Source: Mizuhopecten yessoensis
Lineage: Eukaryota
Length of the DNA: 64,000 bases
Direction: 5' to 3'
NCBI RefSeq assembly: GCF_002113885.1
Contig: NW_018403955.1
Location: forward strand, 220,215 to 284,214
Below, in pieces: positions 63,138 to 64,000 of the stretch (position 1 is its first letter; each line of letters begins with the position of its first letter). Both the position numbers and the translations under genes were made by a program. The notes under the pieces were generated by a model that had not been told where the DNA came from, did not search any database, and saw only the letters and a list, made by a program, of their open reading frames with translations.

Positions 63138-64000
63138 GTGTATCCTGTAAATACTTACCAGATAGAGTACCCTGTATGTGTGTCCTGTTAATACTTACCA
63201 GATAGAGTACCCTGTATGTGTGACCTGTAAATATTTACCAGATAGAGTACGCTGTATGTGTGACCTATAAATACTTACCAGATAGAGTACCCTGTATACG
63301 TATGTACTTACCAGATAGAGTACCCTGTATGTGTGTCCTGTTAATATTTACCAGATAGAGTACCCTGTATGTGTGACCTATAAATACTTCCCAGATAGAG
63401 TACCCTGTATACGTATGTACTTACCAGATAGAGTAGCCTGTATGTGTGTCCTGTTAATATTTACCAGATAGAGTACGCTGTATGTGTGTCCTGTTAGTAT
63501 TTACCACATAGAGTACGCTGTATGTGTGTCCTGTTAGTATTTACCAGATAGAGTAACCTGTATGTGTGACCTATAAATACTTACCAGATAGAGTACCCTG
63601 CATATGTGTCCTGTTAGTATTTACCAGATAGAGTACCCTGTATATGTGTCCTGTTAATACTTACCAGATAGAGTACCCTGTATGTGTGACCTGTAAATAC
63701 TTACCAGATAGAGTACCCTGTATGTGTGTCCTGTAAATACTTACCAGATAGAGTACCCTGTATGTGTGTCCTGTAAAAACTTACCAGATAGAGAACCCTG
63801 TATATGTGTCCTGTTAATACTTACCAGATAGAGTACCCTGTATGTGTGTCCTGTAAATAATTACCAGATAGAGTACCCTGTATGTGTGACCTGTAAATAC
63901 CTACCAGATAGAGTACCCTGTATGTGTGTCCTGTAAAAACTTACCAGATAGAGAACCCTGTATATGTGTCCCGTTAATACTTACCAGATAGAGTACCCTG
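63138..64000 (-). repeat. Splice-donor-spanning 40-bp minisatellite (at least 22 copies, runs off the window) built from an FZR1 exon end plus 5' splice site
   Basis: Minus-strand unit ttaacaggacacacatacagggtactctatctg|gtaagta encodes [11 protein letters not shown] followed by GTAAGT. This is the peptide expected immediately before AMSPDGEAIVTG in FZR1, in the correct phase 0. Confidence 0.95.

Follow-up and report, generated by a model that had tools for sequence, protein, structure and literature searches.

A tandem array built on the FZR1 exon end and 5′ splice site sets 72 donor-like copies behind the authentic donor in a scallop genome

The DNA analyzed here is a window of 64,000 nucleotides (positions 220215-284214 of contig C628 in assembly G000), which was extended by fetching C628:283300-293200 (locus L002). 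The last four coding exons of FZR1/Cdh1 were examined on the minus strand, and the features found at this locus, together with the other arrays discussed below, are listed in Table 1. The gene is FZR1/Cdh1, with a WD40 propeller nearer to FZR1 than to CDC20, as the upstream exon of 141 aa matched residues 274-414 of human fizzy-related (4ui9_R) with an E-value of 1.6e-87, while the match of the same exon to CDC20 chains was far weaker, at about 1e-45. The exon that precedes the array translates to 35 residues (VSTHGY...), and its peptide is 100% identical to the peptides of relatives. The next exon, which is the one that the true donor must join, shares 81-85% DNA identity with the orthologous exon in four other species, and the last coding exon terminates in ...LFTRIR and a stop codon, so the C-terminal IR tail is present. 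FZR1 was found as a single copy in the assembly, with one locus at 100%, and the gene must therefore still work; a second copy that would have freed the array-bearing one to decay was rejected, since the other loci reach only 45-73% and are paralogues. The protein searches returned no sequence from this species, with the best match standing at 94% identity; a few of the protein matches, such as P0106, P0154 and P0163, looked vertebrate, and their contigs were left out of the comparison. On the last contig of the assembly, C82659 (L043), a mitochondrial COX1 with two TGA codons and the mitochondrial code was observed, which is 93% identical to that of Azumapecten farreri and 85-87% identical to those of other scallops; this places the organism among the pectinid scallops.

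Table 1. Features of the FZR1 locus and of the other arrays analyzed. Positions refer to the window unless another locus or contig is named; TRF, Tandem Repeats Finder.
Feature	Position	Strand	Evidence or remarks
Last FZR1 coding exon, ESKSVLNLFTRIR and stop, C-terminal IR tail	55090..55131	-	Read from sequence
Next FZR1 exon, AMSPDGEAIVTGAGDETLRFWNVFSKTRSTK	55632..55724	-	Acceptor ttcttaccag|GCG, donor AAG|gtaaac, phase 0
Rest of FZR1 intron beyond donor array	55725..63136	-	TRF
28-nt minisatellite, ~175 copies, ~4,990 nt	56398-61388	-	TRF
Terminal partial unit, GTAAGTATTTACAGGATACACA (also written gtaagtatttacaggatacaca)	63137..63158	-	Read from sequence
Distal 22 units of donor array	63137..64000	-	TRF and unit-by-unit parse
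Whole donor array, 72 copies after true donor, 2,731 nt	G000:C628:283351-286081 = L002 52-2782	-	
Exon-side end of donor array	Window-equivalent 65867	-	Abuts true exon
True exon, 105 nt	L002 2783-2887 = C628:286082-286186 = window-equivalent 65868-65972	-	Acceptor ctatttccag|GTC, end CTG|GTAAGT
WDR70 array, 54/45-nt units, 3.1 kb	10872-13976	-	Exon end ...KGDPYLLDMSNTK and donor GTATGG
WDR70 exon, ending ...KGDPYLLDMSNTK|GTATG	13937-14090	-	6zym_p match, E 6e-20
Nascent three-copy 46-nt repeat, WDR70 exon end + 20 nt of intron	14824-14958	-	
Preceding WDR70 exon, ...FRSIRPCE, TG|GTATGT	14929-15062	-	
GET4 exon ...SIKRDPSYKE|GTAAGA with ~10 copies of 77-nt unit	L021 8540-9306 = G000:C5579:706639-707405	-	
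53-nt x 6.5 array	L027 8221-8563 = G000:C5579:228221-228563	+	Abuts open frame ...LLKLLPVNITTR|GTGAGG
59-nt x 26 array with AAG|GTATGG	L042 8066-9598	-	Resembles dispersed open-frame repeat ...GYSGFLQGMG...

Read on the minus strand, the unit of the array is ACAGGACACACATACAGGGTACTCTATCTG|GTAAGTATTW, which contains ten codons of the exon end and a consensus 5′ splice site. In the window, at 63137-64000, Tandem Repeats Finder (TRF) reported 22.0 copies of a 40-nt unit with 86% matches, and on recount we obtained exactly the numbers given in the preliminary description, which had been made from the window only: 22 units, 21 with GT and 13 with CTG|GTAAGT. Its figure of at least 22 copies holds for the window, though the array proved three times larger once the contig was extended. 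The same description had placed the true exon beyond position 64,000 and had assigned it to FZR1 unseen; extension of the contig, a check that had been set beforehand, bore this out, as the array is contiguous with an exon of the expected end and the abutting exon belongs to the gene with the FZR1 match given above. TRF describes the whole array as 49 copies of period 40 with 89% matches, together with a mosaic of 33-, 28- and 40-nt units that makes up the exon-proximal third, and the unit-by-unit parse of the whole array yielded 52 units of 40 nt, ten of 33 nt, nine of 28 nt and one of 47 nt. The units, which lie within the range of 10-160 bp, run head to tail in tandem, the array directly adjoins the exon, and its first monomer holds the authentic exon-intron junction. 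Divergence from unit to unit is about 11-14% across the array.

A 38-nt pattern of the unit, with up to 3 mismatches allowed, produced 47 matches in the 988-Mb genome, all of them at C628:283365-286111, and the reversed pattern produced 0 matches in the same 988 Mb; as all the matches fall in one array and the control is empty, chance is excluded. The unit being confined to the FZR1 locus across the genome, a dispersed satellite or a transposon-borne repeat was rejected as its source, and the single assembly contained no second haplotype copy of the unit. An origin of the array, or of most of its length, in the assembly process is extremely unlikely. Though the assembly is fragmented into 82,659 contigs and assembler loops could account for the blocks repeated at offsets of 400-840 nt, the window is free of Ns, the units are distinguished by many substitutions and fall into three length classes in non-periodic order, the sequence on either side is unique and leads into the proper exon and intron, and independent arrays of the same type are present at other genes. 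The existence of the array is secure and its exact length is less so, since exact internal repeats reach 144 nt and the number of assembled copies may therefore be off if short reads were used for the assembly.

With the true donor included, a total of 73 donor-like sites were counted, and GT is kept in 71 of them. The 9-mer of the true donor, CTG|GTAAGT, occurs in 36 of the 73 sites over the whole array, so a splice-site consensus is reiterated inside the intron. A further feature is that 24 decoys read CTG|GTAAGTAT, while the true donor reads CTG|GTAAGTAC; in the scheme of pairing with U1 these decoys are complementary at one base more, and therefore the true site has no advantage from sequence alone, a point against silent decoys. 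The preliminary description had also reported TTAACAG or TTTACAG 26 nt before the GT of each unit, and this is overstated, as T(T/A)ACAG|G was found exactly 26 nt ahead of the next GT in 42 of the 72 units overall, and within the window in 15 of about 21.

The position of the decoys relative to the reading frame depends on the units nearest to the exon. It had been argued from the 40-nt unit that one or two added units would shift the frame, and that any distal donor would remove the last WD40 blade and the IR tail. The first argument fails beside the exon, where the array begins with units of 33 and 28 nt rather than 40 nt: the first decoy (+33 nt) keeps the frame without a stop and would add 11 residues, VSTYVYRVLYL, the second decoy (+61 nt) is only shifted in frame, and the third decoy (+101 nt) and all those beyond it are preceded by an in-frame stop. 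The second argument stands for every decoy except the first, with the loss of the blade and the tail being what would follow if the decoys were used.

At its far end the array closes with a partial unit (63158-63137), as the preliminary description had noticed, and unique intron sequence, AGATACCAGATATGG..., follows it. Exon bases -30 to -19 (ACAGGACACACA) and the final 12 bases of the array (ACAGGATACACA) match at 11 of 12 positions and stand one unit apart in phase, a direct repeat with which the earlier idea of a seeding microhomology is consistent. We infer that the terminal partial unit is a candidate for the direct repeat from which the 40-bp duplication first started; a direct repeat of 12 nt spaced by 40 nt is a usual substrate for slippage. 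The seed would have comprised the last 30 nt of the FZR1 exon and the first 10 nt of the intron, duplicated in tandem as a 40-bp block, probably via slipped-strand mispairing or unequal exchange between 12-nt direct repeats (ACAGGAYACACA) 40 nt apart. Under this microhomology seed, an array-less intron would be expected to start with GTAAGTATTTACAGGATACACAAGATACC. A pre-existing 12-nt repeat is preferred because it accounts for the extra partial piece, which simple duplication of 40 bp would not leave behind. Later expansion to 72 copies may then have yielded the 33- and 28-nt units as deletion derivatives, together with higher-order blocks of several units. This later growth was block-wise, since the array matches itself exactly over 100-144 nt at offsets of 240-840 nt, and TRF also detected higher-order periods of 61, 101 and 162 nt in the proximal part. 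Unit 3 is identical to the exon end at 30 of 30 bases, and in most of the units AGG stands in place of the AGA found in the exon and in the exons of relatives. Taken as a whole, the array is most likely a neutral product of slippage seeded at the direct repeat with 11 of 12 nt matching, and its decoy donors are most likely silent.

Loci of other species were reached via short ORFs that read through the orthologous exon (L013/L014/L015, L016, L044 and L045), with no pectinid locus among those that the orthologue search returned. The position and phase of the intron are conserved in four other species, where the introns are plain, with lengths of 722, 723, 1,586 and 267 nt, and do not contain a repeat of the exon end. 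The comparison of orthologous introns that the preliminary description had asked for thus finds the position shared and the array absent in four other species, and because of this combination the array is derived, a lineage-specific insertion by expansion; the outgroups are distant, with 79-85% identity in exon DNA, so close dating is impossible. The FZR1 intron amounts to 10,143 nt here against 267-1,586 nt in the four other species, and the donor array (2,730 nt), the 28-nt array and a third, small one together fill 77% of it. The 28-nt array does not contain the donor motif, and its derivation from the acceptor of the next exon was rejected, since no similarity to the neighbouring exon was detected beyond that of shuffled controls.

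Three additional junction arrays beyond FZR1 were verified, two in WDR70 and one in GET4. The 77-nt unit of the GET4 array holds the exon end and the donor, and a 54-nt variant of it is also present. The array of locus L027 is probably a further donor-junction array, judging from the good acceptor that precedes its open frame. The array of locus L042 was rejected as a junction array, as no clean exon abuts it and its unit is like a dispersed repeat; it is probably transposon-derived, and a donor motif is thus not enough by itself to recognize a junction array. Counting as minisatellites all arrays with a period of 15 nt or more and at least 2.8 copies, we obtained a share of 32% for the window, where they form about 14 arrays, and of 10.6% for an unbiased, evenly spaced sample of 200 kb from another contig (L023-L042). 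Among the roughly 33 arrays of this sample, one is a convincing junction array (L027), one is doubtful and one is transposon-like. Periodic triplets of GGTAAGT were counted 16,352 times genome-wide against 3,363 for the reversed motif, a 4.9-fold difference. This excess was discarded after further composition-matched control heptamers had given 9,475 and 16,953 matches, as 16,352 lies inside the control range of 3,363-16,953. Neither of the two tests of donor enrichment, the genome-wide triplets and the 200-kb sample, gave a robust excess over chance.

These counts bear on whether a process linked to 5′ splice sites or transcription makes junction-spanning minisatellites preferentially, in which case the FZR1 array would be one product of directed mutation and not of a random seed. 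We consider such a preference unlikely, even though 3 of about 14 arrays in the window span donor junctions, two at WDR70 exons that follow one another, GET4 and the probable L027 case were found elsewhere, and random seeding would give a rough expectation of only 1-2% of arrays. In the unbiased sample only 1 of about 33 arrays is convincing, the GGTAAGT triplets stay within the range of the three control heptamers, and with minisatellites at 10-30% of the sequence, thousands of chance hits on junctions are to be expected. Since the arrays are so abundant, chance overlap with donors, at roughly 1-2% of seeds, by itself predicts very many such arrays genome-wide. It is likewise doubtful that junction-spanning minisatellites arise or persist far above the random-seeding expectation in this scallop. 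Were that the case, the excess would imply duplication coupled to splice sites or transcription, or selection for arrays of U1 sites as introns expand, and FZR1 with its 72 decoys would be an extreme product of that process.

In our analysis the FZR1 array is, with good probability, an intronic minisatellite of the mirage type, in which the first donor is used and the decoys are silent, and which would be neutral or slightly deleterious, a by-product of the extreme abundance of minisatellites in this genome. With the 5′ splice site forming part of the seed, the authentic donor is now trailed by 72 decoys, half of them identical to it. The gene is most likely spliced normally, with the first donor after the exon being picked by exon definition or by first-come selection in the 5′-to-3′ direction, and everything downstream of that donor would then be plain intron. 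We infer the use of the first donor from the analogy with mammals and amphioxus and from the nature of FZR1, an essential single-copy gene that needs the conserved ...RVLYL-AMSPDG... protein. Occasional use of the first decoy would insert its 11 residues in frame, while splicing at later decoys would yield mRNAs with a shifted frame or a stop, which nonsense-mediated decay should remove. The donor array is also one of two arrays that inflated the intron from less than 2 kb to 10 kb.

A function for the array, with about 70 U1-binding sites acting as an element in splicing or transcription, is highly unlikely. Such an element might keep the enlarged intron of 10 kb from being cleaved and polyadenylated prematurely, it might strengthen the donor upstream of it, or it might tune FZR1 dosage via regulated unproductive splicing to decoy donors and subsequent decay. 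FZR1 is dosage-sensitive in other animals, which counts for this possibility, as does the retention of GT in 71 of 73 sites and of the full 9-mer in 36 despite a unit divergence of about 11-14%. However, such retention of GT is expected without selection from recent block-wise expansion and concerted evolution, the four other species do without the array, and the same FZR1 intron carries the unrelated array of 5 kb that has no donor motif. The deletion and insertion series in F7 likewise revealed no regulatory element in the monomers (PMC1557585).

The FZR1 locus is a natural stress test of the choice of 5′ splice sites, since an essential single-copy cell-cycle gene has to select one donor from 73, of which 36 are identical and 24 offer U1 a better pairing. 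Should the first site indeed be the one used, the rule that the most upstream site wins would be carried from 9 sites in human minigenes to 73 in a mollusc. The locus also documents the growth of an intron, as two arrays, with the small third one, account for 77% of 10 kb where other species have 0.3-1.6 kb. For annotation there is a risk that predictors choose a decoy donor and that short-read assemblies mis-size the array, and in a farmed species the array is likely to be a hypervariable marker.

The architecture itself has already been described, with decoys that as a rule stay silent (PMC1557585, PMC3087553), and the FZR1 array is an unusually large example of it, in a mollusc; no report of mirages in molluscs was found in the literature searched. 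In human F7, the first monomer of the 37-bp minisatellite of IVS7 spans the boundary of exon 7 (Borensztajn et al. 2006, PMC1557585). Every pseudo-site of F7 is functional, yet only the most upstream one is used; varying the number of monomers from 1 to 12 leaves the choice of donor unchanged, and mutation of the first site activates the next (PMC1557585). FZR1 resembles F7 in having the first monomer across the exon-intron boundary, with the authentic donor followed by identical pseudo-donors, and in carrying the array in an essential gene, which in F7 is spliced correctly. The two differ in scale and composition, as F7 has 5-9 monomers of 4 exon and 33 intron nt while FZR1 has 72 monomers of 30 exon and 10 intron nt, with unit variants of 33 and 28 nt. 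The splicing outcome was measured in F7, whereas for FZR1 it is the one argued for above. Boundary-spanning arrays are also known in human CBS IVS13, LMNB2 and PDGF intron 4, and intron 2 of human IFI6 (6-16) contains 25 pseudo-sites (PMC1557585). These cases share with FZR1 the reiteration of a donor within the intron by a boundary-spanning minisatellite, though the copy number of FZR1 is about 3 times that of the largest among them. Both IFI6 and CBS constitutively splice at their first two decoys (PMC1557585), which counts against silent decoys here; in FZR1 the first decoy is in frame (+11 residues), while those after it lose the frame or run into a stop. The mirages of amphioxus, reported from Adh3, the globins BflGb6/9, TnC and PGBD5 with splicing undisturbed (PMC3087553, PMC3902484), are likewise tandem duplications of exon-intron boundaries in a minisatellite-rich invertebrate genome. 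As in the scallop, they recur in several genes and show concerted evolution within arrays, but amphioxus is a cephalochordate with 3-6 units in its globins, whereas the scallop is a mollusc in which the array has reached 72 units.
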